A stretch of DNA of 64,000 bases. Origin: Piromyces finnis finn (lineage: Eukaryota > Fungi > Neocallimastigomycota). Under the pieces are notes generated by a model. That model worked only from the letters and a program-made list of their open reading frames with translations. It searched no databases and had not been told where the DNA came from. Numbering within the stretch: the stretch's first letter is position 1; each line of letters opens with the position of its first letter. The stretch covers positions 62,001 to 126,000 of the forward strand of contig MCFH01000067.1 in the NCBI GenBank assembly GCA_002104945.1. Reading direction: 5' to 3'. Below, piece by piece: positions 2,333-64,000 of this stretch. A program made the position numbers and the translations under genes.

Positions 2333-4076
2333 ATTTTATTTAGCAGAAAAACCCATTCCAACTACTGACTGCTACACTTATCTTGGTGTTCCATTTGAAA
2401 AGAATTTGTCCCTTAAACCAGTTATTAAAACTCTTAATAACAAAGTTTTGAAAGGACTTTTTTCAGTCAGTAAATTCTTAAGAAATCCTAATATTCCTAT
2501 TCCTTTCACAAAGCTAGTACTTAACTCACAAGTGATTAGTAGAGTTTCATACTTTCATTACTTGGATCCAACAAAGCTAGGTCTAGGATTGTTCAGAATC
2601 ATGTTAACAAAGGAATACGATGGGTTGCCGGAGTTCATAAAGCTGCATCGTTTATATCTTTATACTCTATCTCATAAGATTTGAATATTCCTCCATTGTC
2701 AGCCAAATGTGCGTTAGCTCAGGTTAGATGTTTTAACAAATGGAAAAACTCAAATTGTATTATCTCACACCTTGTCAATTACATTCCTAAATTTAAAAAA
2801 TATACATGGTGCAAATCAAGTAAGACACTTGATAAAAAATTAAAGAAGCATAGAGATGTTAAAGTAGTTAAAAACTTTTATTGGAAAGATCCCAAAGGGA
2901 ATTCAATCAAAGCACAATATTATGATGATAATAAATTTATTGAAACTAAAGATTTTATCAAATTATGTTATGAGTACCCAGAGTTTGCCTATGGCTTCTA
3001 CTGGCTATTGAAAACAAGAAGCGGATACAAGTTGGATGCTAGAATTGCAAAAGCTGCTAAAATTATTGATCCAGTTTGTCCTAACTACTGTCTATGTTGC
3101 AAAAGTGGAGATCAAAGTATTAAGCATTGGTTATTAGACTGTCCAACATTTAGAGATATCCGTATTAAAAATTACAATTCCATAGTCCAGCTATTAAATT
3201 TTTTCAGTCAGCATAATTCTAACAGTCCTATCAATAATAATGAAAATGTTAATAACAGTAGAGACAGCAATAATATTAATAGTAATAGTAACAAAAGTAG
3301 TAATAATAGTAACAATAGTAATAGTAATAATAATAGTAACAATAGTAATAGTAATAATAGTAATAATAACAATAGTAGTAGTAGTGGTAGAAGTAATAAT
3401 ATTAGTAATGATAGTAATAGTGAAGATAATAATTCTAATTTAGATAATAATTTAGTTAATAATAGTAATAGTTCTAATAATCCGGTGAATATTAATGTGT
3501 ATGATTATTCTAATGTGTGCAGTATAATATTTAAATTCCTTCTTGGGGGAAGAAGTTTTAACAATATCAATTACAATTCAAGGGAATGGAAAGAACTTTG
3601 TAAGCGTCAGATTCAATCTGGTACTAATGAAGGAACACTATTCTTGACAGTAACCGCGGAACTTCTAACCAAAATCATGCCTTTTGCTATTGGCCAGCAA
3701 TGGTCAATGTTCAAAAGGTTTGAAGCAACATCCAAGAGCGTCAATGCTGAAGAAACAGTAAGACAGGCCAGGAGGGCCAGCGCAACCAATGGAGATTATA
3801 ATTTTGTCCCATGATAAAATTTTGATCTTTGGCTCGGTGTCCCATTGGAAGTCAAATACAATTATTATACTTTAGAATCAAAGTGGCTTTCTTACTTTAA
3901 TTAAAAATACTAGAATAGAATACATTATACCCAATTTTTATTCATTTGTGTTTATTTAAATATATTTTTTTTATTTTTATTTTTAATTTTTTTATAACAT
4001 GTATTATAATTTTAATTAAATTAATAATAAAGTTTAAAATATTTGATGCCGTTAAAAAAAAAAAAAAAAAAAAAAA
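2333..4076 (+). mobile_element. 5'-truncated, frameshifted copy of LINE family 1 (end of RT, zinc finger, N/S-rich tract, 3'UTR, poly-A)
   Basis: ORFs 2406-2684 and 2681-3814 match the C-terminus of the 1502-aa ORF at 19439-23947. It ends gatgccgtt plus A-run 4054-4076, like the full-length copy. Confidence 0.95.
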
Positions 4077-4170: not shown

Positions 4171-5481
4171 TATTTAAATTCCTTCTAATAACTCTATAAA
4201 TATTAACGAGCATGCAATGTAGAAAACAAAAATATTATTAAATATTTAATGGATAAATGTGCTAACATGAATATTTTTTAATAGTATATAAACAAGTAAA
4301 TATATTTTAATAATGAGCCAAATACAACAAATTACATATTTTACAACTCAAATACTAAAATCCTTTTTTAAGATACATATTTATTATAATTATTTATTGT
4401 TTTATTAAAAAATATATATATATTATAAACTTTCTATATTAAATGTGATATACATATGTTTATTAATACTTGATATTAATTTTATTTATAATTTTTACTT
4501 AAAAACTAATTATACTTTAGCATAACTTAATATTATTAGCCAGTAAAAAATAAAGAGAATATTCATAATTTTAATTTTGTAAAGTCATTTTGAAAATTTA
4601 AAAATATATAATAATTGATATTACACATTTATAATAGTATCCATTTAAACTTTGTATCAATATTACTTTAATTTTATTTTCTACTTTATTAATTTAGAAA
4701 TTTATAAAATATAAAACATAAAATTAAGCATAATAAAATAAGTTTTCCATTTTATATATAATATATAATAAAAAAAATTGTAAAATAAATATGATGTTAA
4801 TTCTTTAATTAATAAAAAAAAAATTATTTAAATCATATTTTTAATTATTATTAATAACTTTATAAGGAGTATGTTTTTTTTTTATTAATTTTTTAGTTTT
4901 AGCATTTTATTAAAAATAAAGAAATTCCTAAAATATCTTTTTTATTTATTTAAATAAAACTATTTTTTTTGAAAAACATTTAATATTGGTTATTTTTTCT
5001 TATTAAAGTTTTACTACTTAATTTTTGTTATTTTAATAAATCATAATTATTTGGATTACAAATTTTTATTCCCAGTATGAAAAATATTATATACTTCATC
5101 TCTATTTAATAAATCTATAAAAATAATGATATAAATGAAAAATAGAAAATGTGTATGAATTTACTGTTTGAATTAAATAATATTGATAAAAAATAGTATT
5201 TCTAAAAATCATTCTATTACTTTAAATCCTTATAATTATAAATAGTAACATCAATAAATGAAGATATATTTAATATAAATGTATAATTTTATTATTTAAG
5301 AATTATAAGGAGCTTTATTTTTATAGTTATAAATTTTTAAAATTTTATAAATTTTAATTAGAGAAAAATGAAAAGAAGAAAAAAAACCTTTAAAGAAATA
5401 TAATGTTTTATTAAAAAAAAAAAAAAAAAAAAAAAAACATTTAAAAATATTTTTTTTAACTAAATTGAAATTTGGGAAGAA

Positions 5482-7224
5482 ATGAGTTCAGATGTATCAA
5501 TTGATAAAAAATTATTTAAGAAAAACTTAATTTTAATAGCTTTTATATTTATTATTATAATAGCATCAATAGTATGTATTTTAATTAATGATTACGGGCA
5601 AAATATTCAATTTATAAATTTAAAAAGTAAACAAAAAATTCAATTTAAAACTGTTAAAAATATTAAAATAGAAAGTTTAAATAATTTTGAATTAAACAAT
5701 ACTAAAAATATAGAATCAGAAGATACTGGAAAAATCGAAATAGATTATAATGAAAATACTGAAAATATAGAATCAGAAGATACTGGAAAAATCGAAATAG
5801 ATTATAATGAAAATACTGAGAATATAGAATTAAACCATACTAATATTGCTGAATTAAATAATACTAAGCATGTCGAAATAGAAAATATAGAAAACGTTGA
5901 ATCAAGCAATAGTAATAAAACTGAAATAGACAATACTAAAAATAAATTACCAAAAGGATTTGTTTTTTTAGATAATTATATTTCAAATGGCCCGATAACC
6001 CAAAATAGAGATATTGATGATGGGACGAAAAGAAATTTATATCAATTAATTAATAAAGAAAATGATGATTTTAACAACGATGAATATGATTACGATGAAT
6101 ATATGACACTAAAAAATGAAACACATTGGAAATCTGAATATTTCTGTCAAATTAATTCAAAGTCAAGACCTGAAGTTTTGAAAGGATATGATATAACATG
6201 TCCGGAATATTATACTATCGTTATTGATAAAGCATTTTACGGTCGTCATCCAAATGATAAGAAACATTGTCCTATTCGACTTACATATTCAAAACTCAGA
6301 AAATTAAAAAAAGGATGTGGCTATGAACCTATCAATGCTATAAAAAATAATTGTGAGGGAAAGCAATATTGTACACTTATTCCAAGTGATAGAGTGTTTA
6401 AAGATACGTGTGTAGGATTAAAAAAATACCTTCATATTGAATATCATTGTGTAAAAAAGGCACAACTAAAGAAAAAAAGAATTTCAATTGTTTCATTTTA
6501 TGATAATATAAAATCTAATACGATACAAGAACATTCTGTGAGTGAATTTTACCAATATTCTAATATTCATGGTTATGAATATTCCCTAAGCACTTATAAT
6601 TATATTCCAGATCGTGTTATTTATTTTATGAAATTTCAACCGATTATCGAAAAATTAACGGAAGGATTAAAAAATGATAGTTATGATTGGATTGTTTGGG
6701 TTGATAGTGATATTATTATTACCAACCCCAACATTAAAATAGAGACATTTTTACCAGATGAAAAAATGAGTAAAGTTCATTTAATTGCTGCTTTTGACTA
6801 TCGTGGTCGAAAAGATGTATGCTGTGGATTGAATGCAGGTGTTCTCTTTATTCGTGTTCATGAATGGTCCTTAAATTTATTTACAAGGGCAATGGCCTAT
6901 CCTTATTATCGTTCAAAAATGTTATTAGAATTGGATGATCAAACAGCATTAAACAATGTATTGATTGAATTTAATGAAAAGAAACATTATATTATTGTAC
7001 CTCATCAATGGTTTAACACTTTCCAACCCAATAAAGATGGCTTTTTATTACATATTATGGGAGGTAATCAAAAAAAGAAAGAACGTTTCCTCCAGGAATT
7101 CTTTAAAGAGTCTAAAAATAGTTCAGAATGGACAAATAGAACTAATGAAGACATGCGAAAAGAAATTATAGATTATTATAATAAAGATTTGGATGACCAA
7201 TTAAATATTGTTTTACAACCATAA
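5482..7224 (+). CDS. Type II membrane glycosyltransferase: N-terminal TM, Gal/rhamnose-binding (SUEL) lectin domain, GT34 galactosyl/mannosyltransferase domain
   Basis: Hydrophobic LILIAFIFIIIIASIVCILI. Lectin Cys pattern ITCPEYYTIVIDKAFYGR...CEGKQYC...KYLHIEYHC. GT34 motifs WIVWVDSDIII (DxD), GLNAGVLFIR, DQTAL. A 57-bp (19-aa) tandem duplication lies in the stem. Confidence 0.85.
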   Translation: MSSDVSIDKKLFKKNLILIAFIFIIIIASIVCILINDYGQNIQFINLKSKQKIQFKTVKNIKIESLNNFELNNTKNIESEDTGKIEIDYNENTENIESEDTGKIEIDYNENTENIELNHTNIAELNNTKHVEIENIENVESSNSNKTEIDNTKNKLPKGFVFLDNYISNGPITQNRDIDDGTKRNLYQLINKENDDFNNDEYDYDEYMTLKNETHWKSEYFCQINSKSRPEVLKGYDITCPEYYTIVIDKAFYGRHPNDKKHCPIRLTYSKLRKLKKGCGYEPINAIKNNCEGKQYCTLIPSDRVFKDTCVGLKKYLHIEYHCVKKAQLKKKRISIVSFYDNIKSNTIQEHSVSEFYQYSNIHGYEYSLSTYNYIPDRVIYFMKFQPIIEKLTEGLKNDSYDWIVWVDSDIIITNPNIKIETFLPDEKMSKVHLIAAFDYRGRKDVCCGLNAGVLFIRVHEWSLNLFTRAMAYPYYRSKMLLELDDQTALNNVLIEFNEKKHYIIVPHQWFNTFQPNKDGFLLHIMGGNQKKKERFLQEFFKESKNSSEWTNRTNEDMRKEIIDYYNKDLDDQLNIVLQP

Positions 7225-37420: not shown

Positions 37421-39520
37421 TTATATTCTTATTCTATCGGTGAAATAAATATGAAAAATTTCAAACTTTTTAATTATATCATGATTGGAGAGTGGACATT
37501 TTTTTCTTGAGATAAGAATAAACTCTATGATGAGGTTAAAGTAATACCTTGGATTTATATCTGGTATAATTTTTATTTTGGAAGTGAGATGCTCACTTAT
37601 GACTAATGAAGAAATAAGATAACTATCAACAATAATATCTTTTATACTACGCATACCCAATAAATTTTTTGGTATAGTTTGTAATTTATTATTACGCATA
37701 TCTAATTTTTCTAATAAACCAAGGTTAGCAATAAATAAAGGTATTTCCGTTAATTGATTATTACTTATATTTATTTCTTTTGTATTACTATTGTTTACTA
37801 TGTCATAGGGTAGTCTTTTCAACCCCCTGTTCCTTAAATTTATTATATTACTGACATTTATGTAATACATTATAGATAAAGGTTTATCTATATTGATTTC
37901 TACTAAACTAGTTAAATTATTCATTTCCTTTGGTAATTCTGTTAAATCATTGTTATCCCAAAGACGAAATATTTTTAATTTGGATAAATTTCCTATTTCT
38001 TTTGGCAATTCTTTTATATAGTTTTCAGTAATATTTAAATAGTTTAGACTCTTTAAATCACCTATTTCCTTTGGTAACTCCTTTATATTATTAATATCAA
38101 GATTTAATTTTAACAATTTTTGAAGTTTTCCTATTTCTTTTGGAATTACTTCTATATTATTATCAGAAGCGTTAAGAACTCTTAAATTTTTCAAATTTCC
38201 TATTTCAGCTGGTAATTCTATGATATAATTTCTTGATAGATTTAATATTTGTAACCCTGTTAAACCTTCTATTTCTTTTGGTAACGAATTTAGTCCACAA
38301 CATTCAAGACTTAATTTAGTTAGTTTTTTTAGTTGTCCTATTGTTTTTGGTAATTCGTTTATTGTGTTATATCTAATATCTATTTCTTCTACATTGCTTA
38401 ATTTTCCCATACTTTCCGTAAAATCTCTTATTTTATTTGAATGCAATGTTAATTGAACTAAGTTGGTTAGATCTTCTATTCCCCATGGTATATACATCAT
38501 TTCACTATTATCAGCAAAAAAATATTTTAAATTTTTTAAATATCCTATACTTCTTGGGTATACGGCAGTCACTTGATTATAACGAATATTAAATAGGATC
38601 AAATTATTTAAATTACCTATTTCATATGGTATAGTCTTTATTTTATTATTAGACACAATTAATTTTTTTAAATTGCTTAATTTTCCTATTTCTCTTGGAA
38701 GTTCCTTTAACCGATTCATATTAGCATTTAATTCAACTAAATTGTGTAAATTTCCTATTGTATTTGGTAATGATCTTATTTTATTATTGTTAAGATTCAG
38801 TTCTTTTAAACTAGATAATTTTCCTATTTCATCAGTCAAATCCCAAATTTTATTACATTGAAGATTTAAATAAATTAAATTTTTTAGATTTCCTATTTCA
38901 GAAGGTATATATCTAATTTTATTTTCTTCAAGATTTAAATGCGTTAAACTGGTTAAATTTCCTATCTCTTCTGGTAAATCATTAATTTCATTTTCTTCAA
39001 AATTTAAATGGGTTAAATTGGTTAAGTTTCCTATTTCTTTTGGTATAGTAACAGATTGTCTTTTAAATTTATTTTTTCTAACGTTTAAACTCTTTAAATT
39101 AGTTAAGTTTCCTATTTCTTTTGGTAATTCCAAAATTTTATTTTCTGCAATATTTAAATGGGTTAGTTTACTTAAATTTTCTATTTCTTTTGGCAATTCT
39201 TTTAGATAATTACACTCTAAATCCAAACTTTGTATTTCTTTCAACTTAAGAATGGCTTTTGGAATTTTAGTTAATTTTAAAGAATGGAGTTCCAATTCCT
39301 CTATATTTTTTGCAGTTTTCAATAAACTGGTAAGATCTCTACCTATTTTATCGGCTTGAGATTGGTCATTATTAATTATTAATTTTTTTAAATTTGAAAA
39401 TTTAAGTTCCTTTATAGGTATACTTTTAAATTCATCCATCATGACATCAATTAATTCTTTGTCATACTTTCCAAGATCTATATCTGGAGTTTTTGTCTCT
39501 GAATTATCATTTATTACCAT
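37421..39520 (-). CDS. Intronless LRR protein with more than 20 23-aa repeats (LPxEIGNLxxLxxLxLxxNxI); the C-terminus may splice into the downstream ATPase domains
   Basis: 699-aa ORF. No signal peptide. Candidate donor AAG|GTATTA at 37548/37547. Confidence 0.85.
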   Translation of the reverse strand: MVINDNSETKTPDIDLGKYDKELIDVMMDEFKSIPIKELKFSNLKKLIINNDQSQADKIGRDLTSLLKTAKNIEELELHSLKLTKIPKAILKLKEIQSLDLECNYLKELPKEIENLSKLTHLNIAENKILELPKEIGNLTNLKSLNVRKNKFKRQSVTIPKEIGNLTNLTHLNFEENEINDLPEEIGNLTSLTHLNLEENKIRYIPSEIGNLKNLIYLNLQCNKIWDLTDEIGKLSSLKELNLNNNKIRSLPNTIGNLHNLVELNANMNRLKELPREIGKLSNLKKLIVSNNKIKTIPYEIGNLNNLILFNIRYNQVTAVYPRSIGYLKNLKYFFADNSEMMYIPWGIEDLTNLVQLTLHSNKIRDFTESMGKLSNVEEIDIRYNTINELPKTIGQLKKLTKLSLECCGLNSLPKEIEGLTGLQILNLSRNYIIELPAEIGNLKNLRVLNASDNNIEVIPKEIGKLQKLLKLNLDINNIKELPKEIGDLKSLNYLNITENYIKELPKEIGNLSKLKIFRLWDNNDLTELPKEMNNLTSLVEINIDKPLSIMYYINVSNIINLRNRGLKRLPYDIVNNSNTKEINISNNQLTEIPLFIANLGLLEKLDMRNNKLQTIPKNLLGMRSIKDIIVDSYLISSLVISEHLTSKIKIIPDINPRYYFNLIIEFILISRKKCPLSNHDIIKKFEIFHIYFTDRIRI

Positions 39521-53610: not shown

Positions 53611-56349
53611 TTTAAATGAATAATAATTTAATAATATTTAAATAATTGAAATTATATTTAGGAAAGATTAATATTTGTATTACGTAGGACGACAGAGTAT
53701 TTATCTATCTATTTATTTATTTTTATTCTAATAATTTATTTATTATTATATTTATTTATTTATTTAGTTTTCAAAATTCAAAATTATTTTGTTCAATTGT
53801 TATTTGTTTTCAATTTATTATTATATTCATCCATCCATATTAATTTTTAAAACATTCAATTGAAAAACTAATTAAATCAATATTTTATTATTAAATAAAG
53901 TTTATTAATATTACATTTTTAATATTGATATCTTAATTTTTAATCTAAATTAAATTTATTTCATCTATTTTTATATTAAATATTAAATTAAATTTATCGA
54001 TAGAATGGCAATTTTTATATTGATTTTATGACTTAGCCATATAAATGAATTTTTAAATGTAACACAATTGTGTGATACATTATAATCAAATAATTTAATA
54101 AAATATCAATATATTATATTACATTCTAATATAGGTTCATTGTATATTTTAAAACAAAAAATTTCCCAAATTAAATTTTTATCTTCTTTTTTTCTAAAAA
54201 ATTTTTTTTAATTGAAATTGACCCCTTTTTTTTTTTGAATTTATAATTTTTAAATAGAAGGAAAGAAAAAACTAGTAAGTTTGATCGCAACCTTTTTTTA
54301 ATAAAGAATTTTTTATTATTTTTTTTAATAAAGAAATAAAGAGAAAAAAAAGATGATAAATACAAGAATTAATTATAGAAAGCATACAGTACATGAATAG
54401 AATGACGACTATTAATGCTATTGAAGAGTAAATAAGTGATGAATATGACGGGTGATGATGTATTGTTTTTTATTGTTATACAAGTAATGCTAATTTTTTT
54501 TTAATATATTATTTTTATTACATTAATTTCATTTAAATACATTTTAATACATTTTGTATTATGAATATTGTATTGAAAAATAATAAAAACTAACACAATA
54601 CAATTATTATTATTATTGAAAATAATAATTATCTTAGTTATATAATAGCTAATAATATTAAAGTTAAAATTATTAATCTTAAAAAAGAAAAGGCCTTTGT
54701 TATTCTATTTTGAATGAAATGAAACGACGAAACACCAGAATCAAAAACAATTCAATGTTTAAATTTATAAATATGTATATATTTTTAAGGATTATTTATT
54801 CATGATTTATAATTATAATGGTACTTTTAATATAAATTATAATTATTATAATTATGTAATAACGATACCATTAAATTCACTTCAATCATGGATACCAATT
54901 TGAATAATCATTATTTATAGATTATTATTAATTATTTCAACTATATCATAAATAAAGAATATTACTATATTACTTATATTCTAAAAGTTTTTATTAAAAG
55001 GTTAAAATTTATAGATTATAAAAATGTAAATAGTTGAAATCATAATAAAATAAAAATAAAAATAAACATTGTTTATTATAAAAATTAATAATAAATAATG
55101 TATATATGATATAATCATGTATTGAAAATGTAGGAAATAACTAATAATTAAAGTCTAATTTTAATAAAAATTTATTTATTTAGAAATAAGAATATTATTA
55201 ACTTCACAGGACGACACATTTCTATAATATTATGTATATTATAAGTGAGAAACGATATGTGCAATTATAATAAGAGAAATGCTAATTTTTAAATAGTATA
55301 AATAGTAGAAAATAGCTCATTTAAAAAGGGAGTGATTAATAGTTCATAAAATAGCAAATAATAAAAGATCATTAAAACCTTTATAAATATAATTTTTATA
55401 ACAAAATCCTATCAAATATTATTATTTCAAATTAATAAAATAATTTAATATAACACTATAGAAAATAAAAAAAAAAAAAAAATAAATATTATTGTATAAA
55501 GTTTTTTTTTTTTTTTTAACTTTTATATAAATTAAAATTTATTTATTTTTAATATGAAAAATTGAAATATAAATAATTTAAACCATTTGATTATATTACT
55601 TTTTTTATATTTCTTTATACATTACTTTTTTTTATTTTTTTTTACCTTTAATTAGAATAGAAAAAAATAAGAAATAATATTTTTTTTAACTTTACTTTAT
55701 TTTCTAATATTTTTCTATTTCTTTATTCTAGTTTTCTTATAATTATAGTAATTTAAACTTTAATTACTTTTTGTATTATTGAAAACTCACTTATATAATT
55801 TTGATTAGCATGGATATTAGACCAATGATATGTTTAACATTTTTATTTAAACACATCTACCCTTTAGATTCTATGAATGAAATTTGCTATAGAGTTACTA
55901 TTATTAGTAGTAATATTAATTAAGATTGAGCCAAAATCTTTATTATTATTATTGAAAGGAATGAGAGATTTATAAACTAAATCCGTATATTAAGTATTTT
56001 TTCACCATTTTCTATAGGATAGTTTATATAAAACAGATAGATATTTATATTATTTAAAGAAGAAGGATTGTTCTTTAAATTATTTTTTCAATTTTTTATT
56101 TTTTCGGAAAACGAATAATAATATGATAATAACAATTTCAGATATGCTCATTGCTATTGATAACTTATTTAATCTATTAAAAACCTGTCTAGTAGTATTA
56201 TTATAATTATCAGAAAAACTATAATCCAAGATCTATTCTATTAAGTATATTTATATTCGAAATTATAAAGTTTAATTAGTGATACATTTAATAATTGCAT
56301 TAATTGCGATAATATAAATGACAAGAATTTACAAAATGGAAAATAAATA

Positions 56350-56408
56350 AAAATATTAGCGAAAATGGACTTAGTGGTTTAATCCCAAAAGAGATTACGG
56401 AACTAATA

Positions 56409-56460
<52 letters not shown>

Positions 56461-56476
56461 GTAATAGTAATAATTA

Positions 56477-56517
<41 letters not shown>

Positions 56518-56533
56518 GTAATAGTAATAATTA

Positions 56534-56571
<38 letters not shown>

Positions 56572-56587
56572 GTAATAGTAATAATTA

Positions 56588-56627
<40 letters not shown>

Positions 56628-57245
56628 TAGAGTAATAATAATAATAACAATAATAATAATAATAATAATAATTTAAATTTATATATATAATACTTTGTTT
56701 TTTTTCTCTACCTATAATAGAATATAATGATTTTTATTTTAAATTTTTTTTTAAATATATATTTTTATACAATATAACTGGTATGATAATTATAATACCA
56801 AACCAATTTTAATCAAGGATATAAATCTAAAAAAGGATGATTCCACATATCAGAATAAGGACTATTCTGAAAACCAGAATGATGATGATTCAGATAATAA
56901 ACCATTATTAACTACAGTAATTATACCATGAATAAGTATTATTGCTGTATTTGTTATATTCCTAGTTTCTAAAATAAATAAAAAAAATGGTTTAAAGAAC
57001 AACAATGATTCTGTCACTGTAAATATAGAGAATTAAATTTCTACACGTGATTCTTCAAGTAATACAAAAAGAACATCATCTAATATAATAATTTATACTG
57101 CACTTCTTGCTTCAGTTAATAATGCAATAGAGAATAATTGTATTCATTCAAAATTTGTTACTTCAATTAATAATAGAAATATTAGTTCTCAAAATAATGA
57201 ATCAGTAAATAATAATAACAATGGTAAGAGATTATCAAATTATTA
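56350..57245 (+). pseudogene. Degenerate LRR receptor-like paralog (last LRR exon plus TM/tail exon with stops)
   Basis: ISENGLSGLIPKEITEL runs into an AAT tract. 56780-57245 parallels the terminal exon at 61781-62288 but contains stops. Confidence 0.7.
56409..56671. repeat. (AAT)n microsatellite with periodic agtaatagtaataattaga interruptions
   Basis: Seen directly. Confidence 0.95.
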
Positions 57246-57461: not shown

Positions 57462-57571
<110 letters not shown>

Positions 57572-57572
57572 G

Positions 57573-58580
57573 AAATCTAGGTAATAATATTTTAAATGGA
57601 ACTATTCCATCAGAATTTGGAAAACTATCAAACTTACAAACATTGTAAATTGTTTTATATAATTTATTTAAAAATTCATATTTTTATATATAATATTAAT
57701 AAAAAACATATCTTTTTTAAAATAATGCATAACCTCTTTCTTCATTAATATAATATATAAAAGAAAACTCAAAAACAATACTTTAACTGGTCTAATTCCA
57801 TCTGATCTTGGAAAATTACCAAACTTAAAAGAATTGTAATCTTTTTTATATTTATCATAAAGATAGTAAAAATTGTAATACTTAATAATTTGAATTTATA
57901 TTTTATTTAATAATTTAAACTAACAGAGATATAAGTGAAAATGGGTTTAGTGGTTCTATACCAGACGAAATTAAGATGAATGATAATATAGATTTGTAAA
58001 TATCTTAAACTTTTCTTTTTTATTTATATGATTTTATAGTTTTACAATTATCATTGAATAAAGAAGTTTTATATTAAAAAAGTTTTATATATTTAATAAA
58101 ATTTATTTATATTGTAGTACATACAAAAATTATAATGATATTAATAAAGTTAAACCAGTAGTGAATGATACAAATTCAAACGAGGCTAATTTAAATTATA
58201 AACCATCATCATTTAATAAAATAATAGTAATTGAAATGATAATGATAATTACTATTATAATAGCCATATTTTTAGTCTTAACTTTACAGAAAAAGAAAAG
58301 AAGTAATGATAAAAATTTAACAAATTCATATTATTCACGAATTATCAATGATTCATCAGGACGTAACATAATAGTTAATACAAATGATAATAATGATGAC
58401 AATGACTCAATTATTATAAATACGATAACCAATGTTAGAACTAATTTTAATAGTTTATTGAATGATTCCGATAGTAATCCTAATATTACACTTGTTGCAA
58501 CGGACCAACCTCCAAAATATGAAGATATAATAGAAGAAAATATAGAAATAAATCAAAGTAGTATAAATGCAAATAGATGA
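57573..58580 (+). pseudogene. 5'-truncated LRR receptor-like paralog: exons 57573-57644 (72), 57764-57835 (72), 57927-57995 (69), 58118-58580 (TM plus PPKY tail)
   Basis: AG/GT-bounded phase-2 exons join in frame. TM IIVIEMIMIITIIIAIFLVLTL, PPKY at 58509-58520. No signal-peptide exon was found upstream of the AAT run. Confidence 0.75.
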
Positions 58581-59736
58581 ATTTTCGATAATTTAAAGGT
58601 GGAAATGGATGATGTATTGGAAGAAGTTGGGTTATATCAATTCCATATAAAATAAAAACCTCTTTTTAGAATTTATTTTAACTATCCATTATTGAATAAA
58701 GTAAAAATATATTAAATAAAGTTTATTTAAAATATAAATAAATGAAGCAATTAAAATTTAAATTTTAATAAATTAATAATTAAGTAAATTCGTGTAACAA
58801 GAGTTCCATTTTTAGTGTAAATCCTTAAATTAAAATCCAATAAAATTTCATATAAAACATCACAAATGAAAGTTACACAATATTCTAATATTATTAATGA
58901 TATTAATAAATTAATAAAGTTTTATAATTTTATATTAATTATTCTTTTTTTTTTTTTTTAAACAAAAAATGTAAAAATTAAAATGAATTCTATTCTCTAA
59001 TTATGTCAATAATGACTTTAATAATAATGATAGTAAAATAAGTTAATAAACTATACCTCTCTAACTAGTTTACATTGGCAATTTAATGAATGAAAATGAT
59101 ATTTCTATAGGTATATTCTCAGCATTCAATATTAATTTACATTACATTACATTTAAGCGAAATTATAGGAAAAAATTCATCTATAGTTCATCTATTAATA
59201 GTATTGTTTTATGTTTTATATTGTCATGGCATGGATCATTGAGGTAGTTAGGAGTATCTTTGTGAAGTTGGCTCAGTCAGCAGCGCGTAAGTCTCGTAAT
59301 TAAAATGTAAATAGAAATAAAAAAAATCTTTTATATAAAAATAAAATCATTACTTTTTACTCCCCTCCATAAAAAAATAATTATCCTTTACAATTAATTA
59401 TCCGTTTTTAATTCATAAATTATTATTTCTATTATTATTTTTAATTTCAAATGTAGCTTTTTAAATCAAAAAATTCGTGTAACATTTAATTTGTGTAACA
59501 ATAATGATTTTCTAATTAGCCAATAAAATTAAAGCAATATTTTATGAATTACATTTCTATTATTGTTTTTCCAAATTAATATTAAATAAGATTTGATTAT
59601 CATTATTATTATAGTTGACTTTTTTTTACCTTTTTTTTTTTGCCGTTTTTAAAAATAATAGTTCTTTTATTTTAATTTAATAATGCAAAATGTGAATGAA
59701 AAAAAAAAAAAAAAAAAAAGATAGATATAGGAAAAA

Positions 59737-62288
59737 ATGGTTAAATACGCTTTATTATTGTTAAGTTTAACCTCTACAATAAAAGTAATCTATTCAGCAT
59801 TTATTGAAGATTGCATTCCAATAAATAAATTATTAGGAGAACCTTCTGATTATGATTGTTGTTCCCATAAAGGAATTAATTGTATCAATAGTTTTATAAC
59901 AGAAATGTAATAAAAAGTTTTTTTTTTCAATCAGTGAAAAAAGAAAAAAAATATTAACATATTAACATAGATTAAAACAAACTTATTTAACAATTTTTTA
60001 TTATAAATAGAAAATTAGAAAATGAATATTTAAAATGTCCTATTCCTTCAGAAATTGGTAGTTTAAAAAACTTGGAAAAACTGTAATTTTTATTTCAATC
60101 TTCTTAATAAAGAACCTAAAATATATATTATATTTTTTAATTGATATTTACTTATTATTATTATTATTATTATAAATAGAGTTTTATCTCATAACTATTT
60201 ATATGATAATATTCCTTCAGAACTTGGGAATTTATCAAATTTAAAAATATTGTAATTGGTTATTTTTATTTTTATTATTATTATTTTTAAGTAATAATAA
60301 TTAAAAAATATATAAATTAATTTTTTTTTAATTGATAATTTTTATATTATAAAATAGAAATTTAAACTGTAATGATTTAATAGGTACTATCCCTTCTGAA
60401 CTTGGAAATTTAAAAAATTTGGAAGAAATGTAATTATTATTTTTTTTTCTTTATCTATATAAATAGTAGTAATATTGAATAATATAACAATAAATATTAA
60501 TATATAGTCATTATAAATAGCGATTTATCGATTAATCAATTAAGAAGTTCAATTCCTCGTGAAATTGGAAATTTACCAAACTTGAAAAAATTGTAAATAT
60601 TTTTTTTTCTTTTATAATAAGTAAAAAAAAAAAAAATAGATTTATAGAATTATTATTTTTTTTAATATTAATATATTTTATATTTTACATAGGATATTAT
60701 ATTCAAATGATATAATAAATATGATTCCTTCAGAACTTGGTAAATTAGAAAAATTGAATATGCTGTAACTATTTTTCTTTTCTTTTCTTTATAATAAATA
60801 GTAAATTTTCATATATAATAATTTATAATTTTTATTTCATATTATTATGTATTATAAATAGAGTAATCAATAATAATGCATTAAGTGGTTCTATTCCTCC
60901 AGAACTTGGCAATTTAAAAAACTTATATTATTTGTAAATAATATTTTTCAATATTATAAATTTTAATATTCTATTTATTATTACAATTTTATTTATTTTT
61001 TTTTTTTTTATTATTTTCTAATATAAATAGAAGTCTTAATAATAATATGTTATATGATGCTATTCCTCCTGAGCTTAGTAATTTGGAAAACCTGGAATAT
61101 ATGTAATTGCTGGTTTTTTTCTTATATGCATTAAAAGAAATTTATTAATTTTTATTTCAACCTCATATTTTTTAAAATTTTATTTATTCATGATTAATAT
61201 AATAAAATTCATTTAAAAAATAAAAGGTATTTCGGAAATAATACTTTAAATGGTTCTATTCCCCCTTCTTTTGGAAATTTATCAAAATTAAAAATTCTGT
61301 AATATAATTTATTTAATAATTATTATAAAAATAAAAAGTTATTATATTTATAAATAGGAATTAAAAGTTAACAATTACCCATTTTCTTATATAAATGTTA
61401 TTTTTAATAATCCTTATTAAAAAAAAAATAATAAAGAAATCTCCAAAATAATACTTTAAGTGGTCCTATTCCACCAGAACTTGGAAGATTATCAAACTTG
61501 AAGGAATTGTAAATTTATATTTTATAAAAATTATTAATTAAATAACAATAATAAAAATCTCATATAATTTTTTTTTTTTTTATAAATTTATAAAAAAAAA
61601 TAGAGATATTAGCGAAAATGGATTTAGTGGTTCTATTCCAGATGAAATATTTGAATTACAAACGTGTAAAATGTAAATACTATTTCTTTTAATTGTATTG
61701 TATTATAAATAATTCATAAATATATATTATTTTAATTAATTACATTTTTGTATAATAAAAAAATAAAAAATATAATATAGATATAGAAAAAATTTTAATA
61801 CCAAACCAATTTCAATCAAGGATATTCCTCAAAATAAGGATGTTTCAGATAATAAAAATAAAAATAATAAATCAATAATAACTACGGTAACCATGTCAGG
61901 AATGAGTATTGTTGCTTTATCAGCTTTATTTCTGGTTATAAAGAAAAATAAAAAAAATAATATAAAAAAAAAGAATAATTCTACAAACAATGTGAATAAT
62001 ATATATAATATAAATGATTGTTTTCCTTCCTCTACTGATTCTTCAAACGATATCAAAAGAATATCTAATCATTCTAATACTGTTTATAATGCTCATCTTG
62101 CACCAGTTGATGATACAATTAATAATAATAGAAATCATTCAAAATCTGTTAATTCAATTAATAATAGAAACAATAATTCACAAAATAATGAAACAAGAAA
62201 TAACAATATTTTCAATTATAACATTTCTATCAATGAAGAAGACTTACTTCCAAGTTATAAAGAAGTAGTAAATGAAAAAAATACATAA
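59737..62288 (+). CDS. LRR receptor-like membrane protein (464 aa): exon 59737-59906 (signal/Cys-cap); 72-nt LRR exons starting 60011, 60180, 60358, 60521, 60693, 60862, 61031, 61227, 61437; 69-nt exon 61604-61672; final exon 61781-62288 (TM, Asn-rich tail, LPSY)
   Basis: All introns are GT-AG and phase 2. The total is 1395 nt, in frame. Repeats read LxxNxLsGsIPxELGxLxxLxxL. Confidence 0.9.
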
Positions 62289-64000
62289 TAACACAATTAC
62301 AATGTATAAATATTAATTATAATAATATAAATGAAAAAGACAACCAAGTTATTAATATTAATGTATAATAACATTGTAATATATATTTAAAAGAATTATA
62401 ATTCTCTTTTTATATATTTATTTTAAATACCCAAACCTAATAATATTATGAGTTTTTTAAATCTATTTTAAAACTTTAAAAAAAAAAAAAAAGTATTAAT
62501 TTTTGATTATTTTTTATTTTATTAAAGAATAAATAATAATACTTTTTAAATTTAACTATCAATTAGAATAAAACTACAAAAAAATAGAAATAAAGTAATT
62601 AAATAATATAAATAACAAATGTTATTAGATATTTTATATTTAAATATAGTTATCTAATATTTATTTAAATATTAGTTTTTTTTCTTTCAAATTTAAATAA
62701 ATTTAATATTATATTATCACTTTAATTTTTCAGTTAAAATGTTTTCAATATTTCGTATCGAGTAATAATTAATTTTTGATTTTTATTAACAAAATAAAAA
62801 AAAAAGAAATAAGAATATAATAATAATATTAAATACATAAATATTATAAATATATAATATTTAGTATGTATAGGTATAATGAATATTTTGTAATCTCAAA
62901 TCCAGATTTTAATCGAGTATTAAAATATAATTGACTTAATATTTTTATTTATATAATTTTATTTTTTTTTTTTAATTTTTTTATCCTTTATTCCTCAAGA
63001 TATAGATAATATATTAAACATGATAAAATTATAATTATTTGTTTTTACTTTATTTAAAAGAATAATATTATTAAAATGTATATATTGATTTATAATTTAT
63101 CGCTTTCTATTATAAACTGAATGTTATGAATAATTTAAATAGAATTATCCCTTAAGAGCTTGGAAATTTAAAAAAAATAATTATATAAATCCACAAATAA
63201 CAATTTTATTATAAATACGTTACATTACACGATGTTAAGAAAAATCATCTTATTAAATAATATTAATAATAATTAGTTTAGCTTTAGTAAAGGGGACTTT
63301 TCAAATTGAAAGAGTGAAGCGTATAAAAATAAAAAAAAAATTTTTAAATTGAAAGTTTAATTTTTTTTTTGTATTTTTTATTAAATTTTATTTTCAGTTG
63401 TGTAACATAAAAATTAACTAATGTATACATTGATGTATTACATTAAAATAAGATAAAATAGCGCTTTCTTTTTTTTTTTTTACATTTTATATATAAATAT
63501 TCATATTTTTTTATTGTTAATATTAGTACATAGATCTATAAGATCATATATAATTACTTTTTAATAGATTTAAGAGTCGAGTCATATTGACTCTTCATTG
63601 AATTTCATTAATTCTTGGTTAATTTTCTTTTGGTACTAGTAGTGATTTGTCCTTTTCTGTTTAATACATCGTCATAACTTTAAAGTATGAAATTTTCACT
63701 AACAACTAAATTGTTGTTATGTACATTATCTAATTATTTAGTACTATAACATGTCACTTTACTCTTTATTATAATTAATTATATCTATATAATTATAAAA
63801 ATCTGCATTATTTCTCTTTTTTTATATTATAATTTATAATTTCATATTTTAATTTCATTAAATATAAATAATTACCAAAATAATAATTTATTTAAATATT
63901 CTATTCAATTTCTTTAACTTTAAAATAAATTAGAAATTATTATATAAATAAAGTATAAAATGGATTAATTAAACTAGAATAAATTATTAACATTATTATT

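Follow-up and report, generated by a model that had tools for sequence, protein, structure and literature searches.

An expressed Piromyces finnis gene with one leucine-rich repeat per phase-2 exon encodes a predicted membrane protein of plant receptor-like design

For gut fungi, the only mention of genes with leucine-rich repeats (LRRs) found in the literature searched was a BLAST label, 'LRR receptor-like serine...', in one expression table, attached to a gene among those down-regulated in Pecoramyces in methanogen co-culture (PMC6414434). Here we describe a 12-exon gene on the forward strand of a 64,000-nucleotide stretch of Piromyces finnis DNA (contig MCFH01000067.1, positions 62,001 to 126,000; hereafter the window, in which positions are numbered from 1). 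The gene, at 59737-62290, is real, spliced and expressed, and encodes each LRR on an exon of its own. We consider it, with a probability of roughly 80%, a constitutively spliced gene for a type-I fungal surface membrane protein of plant LRR receptor-like design. As part of this reading, the phase-2, one-repeat-per-exon layout is taken as inherited gene structure and not as a device in current use for producing variants.

Candidate exons were found mechanically, as matches to AG-N(66-78)-GTAA with an open frame read from the second base. Across the two strands of the window, AG-N72-GTAA with an open frame at offset 1 has 21 matches. LRR exons account for 19 of them, nine in the 12-exon gene, which excludes chance as an explanation of the exon pattern. 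Exon 1 (59737-59906, 170 nt), defined by the sequence and by transcript contigs, holds the start codon, a signal peptide and an N-cap with four cysteines, and its 3' end lies two bases into the codon for the fourth consensus position of the first LRR. Nine exons of 72 nt follow, LRR exons 1 to 9, at 60011-60082, 60180-60251, 60358-60429, 60521-60592, 60693-60764, 60862-60933, 61031-61102, 61227-61298 and 61437-61508, all in phase 2 at both ends. LRR exon 10 (61604-61672) has 69 nt and encodes a specialised last repeat with one cysteine. These ten exons are defined by the pattern together with transcript contigs, which in the case of LRR exon 2, part of a repeat zone left out of the alignment, contribute 72 contiguous letters between LRR exons 1 and 3. 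The last exon (61781-62290, 510 nt), defined by the sequence and by a transcript contig, encodes a juxtamembrane segment, a transmembrane (TM) helix, a lysine-rich stop-transfer sequence and an asparagine-rich tail, and closes with the stop codon at 62288-62290.

The spliced coding sequence has 1395 nt and translates into 464 residues. Exon starts are spaced 163-210 nt apart, and all 11 introns, 91-138 nt in length, begin with GTAA, end with AG and interrupt the frame in phase 2. The G+C content is about 15-25% in the region as a whole, 19-32% in exons and 5-14% in introns. A sequence-only reading of the window had proposed nine 72-nt exons and one 69-nt exon of phase 2 with one LRR each, flanked by a signal and cysteine-cap exon and by a TM exon that lacks a kinase; its coordinates and phases agree with ours, and so do both flanking exons. 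It had also called the gene cryptic, which holds for prokaryote-style calling of open reading frames (ORFs) and not beyond: a six-frame listing of ORFs of at least 50 residues detects exon 1 and the last exon and misses the ectodomain entirely. For annotation the lesson is that ORF-based gene calling drops the whole ectodomain of genes with such exons.

The RNA data consisted of assembled contigs of three runs from two studies of the same organism. The runs contain 0.12-0.41 of the sampled words of 59700-62300, a stretch of which 0.54 is exonic. Transcript contigs match the exons with 0 mismatches and cover 11/11 junctions, seven through listed joints and the other four through contiguous positions in the records. 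Direct joints are 59906>60011, 60429>60521, 60592>60693, 61102>61227, 61298>61437 and 61508>61604; the joint 60082>60724 stands for the junction of exons 2 and 3, displaced because the alignment passes over a repeat. At the 5' end contig cover extends over 59734-59906 and is joined to 60011. A contig of 485 nt contains 5' untranslated region (UTR), exon 1 and LRR exons 1-3 and reaches into LRR exon 4, one of 1132 nt leads from LRR exons 3-10 into the last exon, and a contig at 61782-62344 passes through the stop and ends 54 nt beyond it in the 3' UTR. The last acceptor used in the contigs is 61781, not 61787.

The sole isoform in the three assemblies contains all exons in genomic order. No exon-skipped isoform was seen in the contigs of the three runs, bearing in mind that assembled contigs drop rare variants. 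Two joints considered as exon skipping, 60583>61271 and 61298>61626, were rejected, having sides of 22-24 nt that lie off the repeat register and are not bounded by GT..AG; since the contigs with such odd joints do not otherwise fit the gene, they are attributed to transcripts of paralogs. Contigs of all three runs also join 62340 back to 59937, with nine letters between, and those of two runs (X1 and X2) join 62427 back to 60618, with 38 letters between. Both target sites are A+T-rich intron stretches, and the back-joins are probably low-complexity cross-matches of other transcripts.

The encoded protein begins with a signal peptide, with its hydrophobic core at residues 5-23, and a cap with cysteines at positions 26, 41, 42 and 49. 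Ten repeats of 24 residues (23 in the last) follow, with the consensus xLxNNxLxGxIPxELGNLxNLKx, in which the I, P and L positions are invariant in the ten-exon consensus. Both terminal repeats are specialised as caps and are not interchangeable units. The ectodomain contains six N-glycosylation sequons. A TM helix is predicted from hydropathy at residues about 327-350 (61872-61943; best 19-mer Kyte-Doolittle mean 2.05), the sole hydrophobic peak besides the signal peptide, and is followed by KKNKKNNIKKK, a lysine run as expected from the positive-inside rule. The C-terminal tail of some 110 residues is 30% asparagine and ends EEDLLPSYKEVV.... Pfam gives weak LRR_1 matches from single repeats, no family in exon 1 at E-values up to 1, and no domain, kinase included, in the last exon; the pattern CC...G[IV]xC in the cap is visible by eye only. 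Signal peptide, extracellular LRRs, one TM helix and a kinase-less tail together make up the architecture of a receptor-like protein (RLP).

The repeats belong to the plant-specific (PS) LRR class, with its 24-residue signature LxxLxLxxNxLxGxIPxxLGxLxxL, found in the ten exons. When used against the PDB, the profile of these exons matched almost exclusively plant LRR receptor ectodomains, with GSO1 as best match (E 2e-78) and FLS2, MIK2, RGFR, ERL1, BRI1, PEPR1, HSL1, TDR, PSKR1, SERK, TMM and PGIP among the others. A scan of metagenome contigs with four LRR exons yielded 80 loci, mostly intronless arrays. Three of these, L029, L072 and L075, which have 23% G+C, are uninterrupted transcripts that share the architecture of the 12-exon gene. 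L029 encodes a complete protein of 498 residues that aligns to residues 1-451 of the gene product with 35.5% identity and contains Pfam LRR_1/4/8/14; a look-up of this protein returned its own metatranscriptome contig and nothing else. Its AlphaFold model has a predicted local distance difference test score (pLDDT) above 90 for residues about 50-250, which comprise cap and repeats, and a low score beyond. The 50 best PDB matches of the model are all plant LRR ectodomains, and GSO1 superimposes with a root-mean-square deviation of 0.9 over 194 columns.

Judged by sequence comparison, 'plant-type' names a class of repeat and carries no indication of origin. For this, the spliced model was run in a local BLAST against retrieved proteins. 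Over the 240 residues of the LRR domain, identity is 50-56% with proteins from bacterial metagenomes, of which one bears the label Aminicenantes, 42-49% with three plant kinases and 32% with another. Bacterial LRR arrays are as similar as plant kinases or more so, and the term is therefore used here as a class label only. Homology searches seeded with L029, alone or aligned with the exon pieces of the gene, were dominated by bacterial and plant proteins with many repeats; a search with the cap region gave no matches. The 'plant-specific' class of LRR thus named also has a wide distribution among bacteria, and bacterial GxIP arrays (P0134, P0035, P0190 and others) have an N-terminal consensus, ALxALYxxTxGxxW...WxGVxxxxxGxV, that resembles plant LRRNT.

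The protein part encoded by the last exon has no relative among 1.84 billion representatives and none in the JGI metagenomes, and its lone match, P0001, was discarded as an unrelated bacterial repeat protein with low-complexity similarity. On these searches the tail appears to be lineage-specific. It contains LPSY at residues 452-455 of 464 (62247-62258), 13 residues from the C-terminus and with acidic flanks, a candidate WW-domain site for an Rsp5/Nedd4-type ligase. Comparable motifs are present in the tails of a partial paralog just upstream, fragment C (PPKY; tail at 58119-58580), and of L029 (PPNY within PPPNY), 24 and 27 residues from the end, respectively. Hence each of the three complete tails has a single (L/P)PxY, the only one in its protein, at a distance of 13-27 residues from the C-terminus, whereas shuffled tails show it in 0.5-1.5% of cases per tail. 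Motifs of the form (L/P)PxY bind WW domains of Rsp5/Nedd4-type ligases. This known binding and the recurrence of the motif lead us to infer ubiquitin-dependent endocytosis or turnover, and the motif provides a concrete handle for cell-biological work.

A mechanism may be envisaged on this basis. The ten GxIP repeats would form a curved solenoid that starts with a disulfide-type N-cap and offers its concave sheet as putative ligand face, followed by the single TM helix and a disordered, asparagine-rich cytoplasmic tail. The ectodomain would bind a putative extracellular ligand. The protein would have no catalytic output of its own and any signal would pass through a partner, while its level at the surface is probably set by ubiquitin-dependent endocytosis via the C-terminal LPSY.

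In weighing this reading, the gene structure, its splicing and expression, the repeat class, the topology signals and the paralogs are directly established. Several points count against it. Its transcript evidence consists of assembled contigs, from which rare isoforms such as minor exon-skipped forms are dropped. The fold model speaks for the family, as it comes from L029, a relative with 35% identity, and not from the protein itself. Pfam LRRNT_2 is absent from exon 1 as well as from the cap exon of the second complete gene of the window (gene B, described below) and from the L029 hits. The surface location is predicted, and ligand binding, signalling through a partner and turnover via the PY motif are what we infer; as the tail has no detectable relatives, the last of these is a lead based on three sequences and on a motif picked out in hindsight.

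The exon arithmetic is open to another explanation, along the lines of the sequence-only reading, namely that symmetric exons are skipped, duplicated or swapped, by alternative splicing or frequent recombination, to yield a diversifying receptor with many binding specificities. We regard this as improbable. It has in its favour that all LRR exons are symmetric, phase 2-2 and of 72 or 69 nt, such that any internal subset remains in frame, that the family is clustered and multi-copy, and that brown algae provide a precedent that includes splicing variants (PMC11378527). Yet the three RNA assemblies contain one isoform, the odd joints belonging to transcripts of paralogs, and the terminal repeats are specialised, which contradicts the idea that any exon is interchangeable.

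Repeats of one gene resemble each other (identity up to 82% in gene B and 74% in the 12-exon gene) more than they resemble those of the other gene (at most 69%), which would agree with diversification; it indicates that each gene independently underwent duplication or conversion of units at some earlier time, as happens in most LRR arrays. Between exon pairs inside the gene, identity is 46-74% at the DNA level and 23-61% at the protein level, so that none can be a recent copy or swap. Near-identical exons at other positions or in other genes were not found, the highest identities being 74% for exons of the gene itself and 69% in comparison with gene B. Similarity among introns (z 3-6 against mononucleotide shuffles) was considered as a trace of recent duplication and rejected; it is ascribed to splice-site motifs and A+T-rich composition.

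Fragment C (57573-58583, forward strand) retains three LRR exons, at 57573-57644, 57764-57835 and 57927-57995, and a TM/tail exon. These LRR exons are collinear with LRR exons 8-10 of the gene, with identities of 71, 82 and 67% in the same order; the 82% match thus occupies a collinear position. The last repeat starts with DISENGFSGSIPDEI, and its first 15 residues are identical in fragment C. Over 68 codons the ratio of nonsynonymous to synonymous substitution rates (dN/dS) against fragment C is 0.36 by the NG86 method and 0.55 by LWL85. The ratio is not raised at concave positions: the 12 codons of the concave face have a dN of 0.15 and a dS of 1.29, with no excess of replacements, in a sample too small for a site test. 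An invariant isoform, a kept exon order and purifying selection had been named beforehand as the outcome that would speak against diversification, and all three are what we find with contig-level data. The claim that the exon arithmetic is used to diversify the receptor was not borne out, and this gene provides no evidence for a new mechanism of generating diversity. We retain the reading of a constitutively spliced gene whose layout is inherited.

The gene is part of a cluster. No cap exon was found for fragment C, the first exon of which is directly abutted on its 5' side by an (ATA)n microsatellite (57463-57570); the fragment is transcribed, two RNA runs containing 0.48-0.58 of its sampled words. 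Further upstream, sequence comparison identifies fragment D (56271-57230, forward strand) as a dead chimeric copy. In it a C-cap exon that retains its acceptor and belongs to the chitin-anchored subfamily runs without an intron into a last-LRR exon of the TM type, the fusion point lying some 10 nt ahead of the latter; the 3' part consists of long (ATA)n/(ATAGTA) arrays (56400-56680) and, after them, a last-exon homolog interrupted by two in-frame stops. As an exon-scale mosaic of two subfamilies fragment D might be cited for exon swapping, but this sole mosaic seen is a dead copy containing stops. Downstream of the gene lies a lone decayed LRR exon (63110-63190, forward strand) with an in-frame stop inside the IP..ELGNL motif.

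Gene B, on the reverse strand (33776-31438), has 12 exons encoding 389 residues and shares the cap and the phase-2 exon design. It comprises nine one-LRR exons, a cysteine-containing C-cap exon of 69 nt and a last exon with a hevein-type chitin-binding module (Pfam Chitin_bind_1, 31.1 bits against a cut-off of 27.8). From its sequence, the same ectodomain design appears to be used with two anchors, a membrane helix or a chitin-binding wall anchor. The chitin-anchored version makes a role in binding, adhesion or capture at least as arguable as classical receptor signalling. The locus looks like one of tandem birth and death with occasional illegitimate recombination among family members, and the multi-copy family would grow and decay through tandem duplication.

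These surroundings also raise the question whether the 12-exon gene is a non-functional relic that decays like its upstream neighbours, flanked as it is by the dead chimera, the decayed LRR exon and a possibly 5'-truncated paralog. We give this very little credence, less than any other explanation considered, as the frame is intact over 12 exons, 22/22 splice sites are canonical, spliced transcripts without mismatches occur in three runs and comparison with the paralog indicates purifying selection.

Two other elements were observed in the window. An uninterrupted frame on the reverse strand (37976-39127) encodes at least 12 repeats of 23 residues with the consensus LxLxxNxIxxLPxEIGNLxxL, lacks GxIP and has an intronless repeat region; it belongs to another LRR family than the 12-exon gene. 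Between fragment C and the gene lies a tRNA-like string (59240-59300, forward strand), in a stretch with 27-30% G+C over 59100-59399. ARAGORN detected no tRNA in 58600-59740, and the string may be the head of a tRNA-derived short interspersed nuclear element (SINE).

To examine the plant-like gene structure, the exon register was compared with that of a plant contig from the metagenome scan, L047, which contains a Malectin domain (E 8e-15) in an ORF whose nearest Atlas cluster is one of Streptophyta malectin proteins (0.98); by sequence its gene fits the LRR-malectin kinase type (VIII-2 type). In L047 the cap exon ends in CT before the donor gtaag, the first LRR exon has 75 nt, and exons of 72, 72, 72, 72 and 69 nt follow. 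LRR exons at 3336-3407, 4821-4892, 5000-5071, 5164-5235 and 6948-7016 of that contig consist of 1 base, 22 or 23 codons and 2 bases; over all LRR exons the range is 22-24 codons, with I-P at codons 11-12. In both genes phase-2 introns cut inside the codon of consensus position L4, and with this one plant gene compared, register and phase are identical, the boundary between cap and first LRR included. The stretches 3270-3440 and 4750-4930 of L047, each a 72-nt LRR exon with about 70 nt of flanking intron on either side, are highly similar and 1.5 kb apart, to all appearances because an exon was recently duplicated in this plant gene of the same layout.

A second register is found in marine loci. 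In L008, L010, L025, L032, L054 and L057 each LRR is again encoded by one 72-nt exon, here composed of 2 bases, 23 codons and 1 base, which places the cut 8 nt downstream of that in the gut fungus and the plant. This matches the layout of brown-alga ROCO genes, in which 'nucleotides 3 to 71' of the exon encode the 23 residues of the repeat (PMC11378527). The marine metagenome contigs (L007, L008, L010, L025, L030-L032, L054, L057 and L061) have about 34% G+C and GTAAG/GTGAG donors, and several are near-copies of one another with exon order kept. These loci probably come from stramenopiles and represent the type of gene known from Ectocarpus. At least two registers of the one-repeat-per-exon layout thus exist, of which the gut fungus has that of the plant.

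An intron-containing LRR receptor gene could have passed from a plant to an ancestor of the gut fungi, with its exon layout kept, and have expanded later, a possibility suggested by sequence data that we hold to be unlikely, if less so than diversification. Uptake of a plant gene with its introns would explain why register, phase and cap/LRR1 boundary are the same as in a plant LRR-malectin kinase gene, where a random match of register is expected about 1 time in 72, and the brown-alga type, the second lineage with one LRR per exon, has another register, 8 nt apart. Structure and profile comparisons both find their best matches in plant ectodomains, the habitat of the fungus is plant tissue, and LRR receptors were missing in 45/49 fungal genomes in a survey from 2010 (PMC2939053). 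On the other hand, bacterial LRR proteins resemble the domain as much as plant kinases do or more (50-56% over 240 residues, against 42-49%), and Pfam LRRNT_2 fails to recognise the cap. Reports of LRR receptor kinases in chytrids (PMC13618815) imply that the family may be old in early fungi, and a single shared intron position could arise once and then spread through unit duplication. A fuller and equally doubtful version has the transferred gene expand into a fungal repertoire for surface recognition or adhesion with two anchors, either TM helix with PY tail or chitin-binding module. If true, such a passage of a spliced receptor gene from plant to fungus would be a rare event and would speak against the idea that LRR surface receptors are missing in fungi. 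With the register shared between gut fungus and plant, the family's origin becomes testable as transfer, deep ancestry or convergence.

An expressed LRR protein of plant type, predicted to be membrane-anchored and belonging to a clustered family, would mean that the gut-fungus lineage uses an LRR ectodomain at its surface. Soanes and Talbot found no LRR receptors in 45/49 fungal genomes and isolated cases in a chytrid and in zygomycetes, in a survey that took in no gut fungus (PMC2939053), and high-copy LRR receptor kinases have been described in chytrids (PMC13618815). The present analysis contributes the direct comparison of registers, the caveat of bacterial similarity, the chimeric dead copy and the PY motif.

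Among known systems, bacterial proteins with 24-residue GxIP repeats (fused to type IX secretion system (T9SS), immunoglobulin (Ig)-like, fibronectin or S-layer modules) are like the gene product in LRR identity and have an N-cap consensus of the W/GV type. They differ in being intronless, in having many more repeats and bacterial anchors, and in lacking the eukaryotic design of signal peptide, TM helix and tail. Brown-alga ROCO and type-I LRR genes (PMC3341825, PMC11378527) share with the gene one LRR per symmetric 72-nt exon, so that in principle repeats could be gained, lost or skipped in frame; the ROCO genes have cytosolic ROC-COR partners and a register 8 nt downstream. The shuffling of LRR exons in ROCO genes, which the sequence-only reading had quoted as a precedent, is indeed described in both papers; shuffling, positive selection and splice variants are reported for the brown-alga genes, whereas in the gut-fungus gene none of these was seen in the exon comparisons, the 68 codons compared and the contigs of three RNA runs.

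Plant LRR kinase genes are closer in structure. That they may have one LRR per exon, also quoted as a precedent, for ERECTA-type kinases, is seen directly on the plant contig L047 with its 72-nt exons, and in SERK genes the domains are encoded on separate exons (PMC3061892). L047 and the gut-fungus gene have in common the 72-nt one-LRR exons, the phase-2 introns in the L4 codon and the end of the cap exon; the latter gene lacks kinase and malectin exons, and its introns are about 100 nt long with about 90% A+T. In protein design the best counterpart is found in plant RLPs, for instance TMM and the class of RLPs with signalling via adaptor kinases, which have in common with the gene product a signal peptide, a cysteine N-cap, 24-residue LxxLxLxxNxLxGxIP repeats, a single TM helix and a short, non-catalytic tail. 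TMM, PGIP, SERK, FLS2, MIK2 and GSO1 match both the repeat profile and the L029 model. The gut-fungus protein differs from them by its fungal host, a cap that is not LRRNT_2, the lack of an island domain, a single cysteine after the last repeat and a tail of about 110 residues that is rich in asparagine and carries the PY motif, such that it is likened to plant RLPs by architecture and not by clade.

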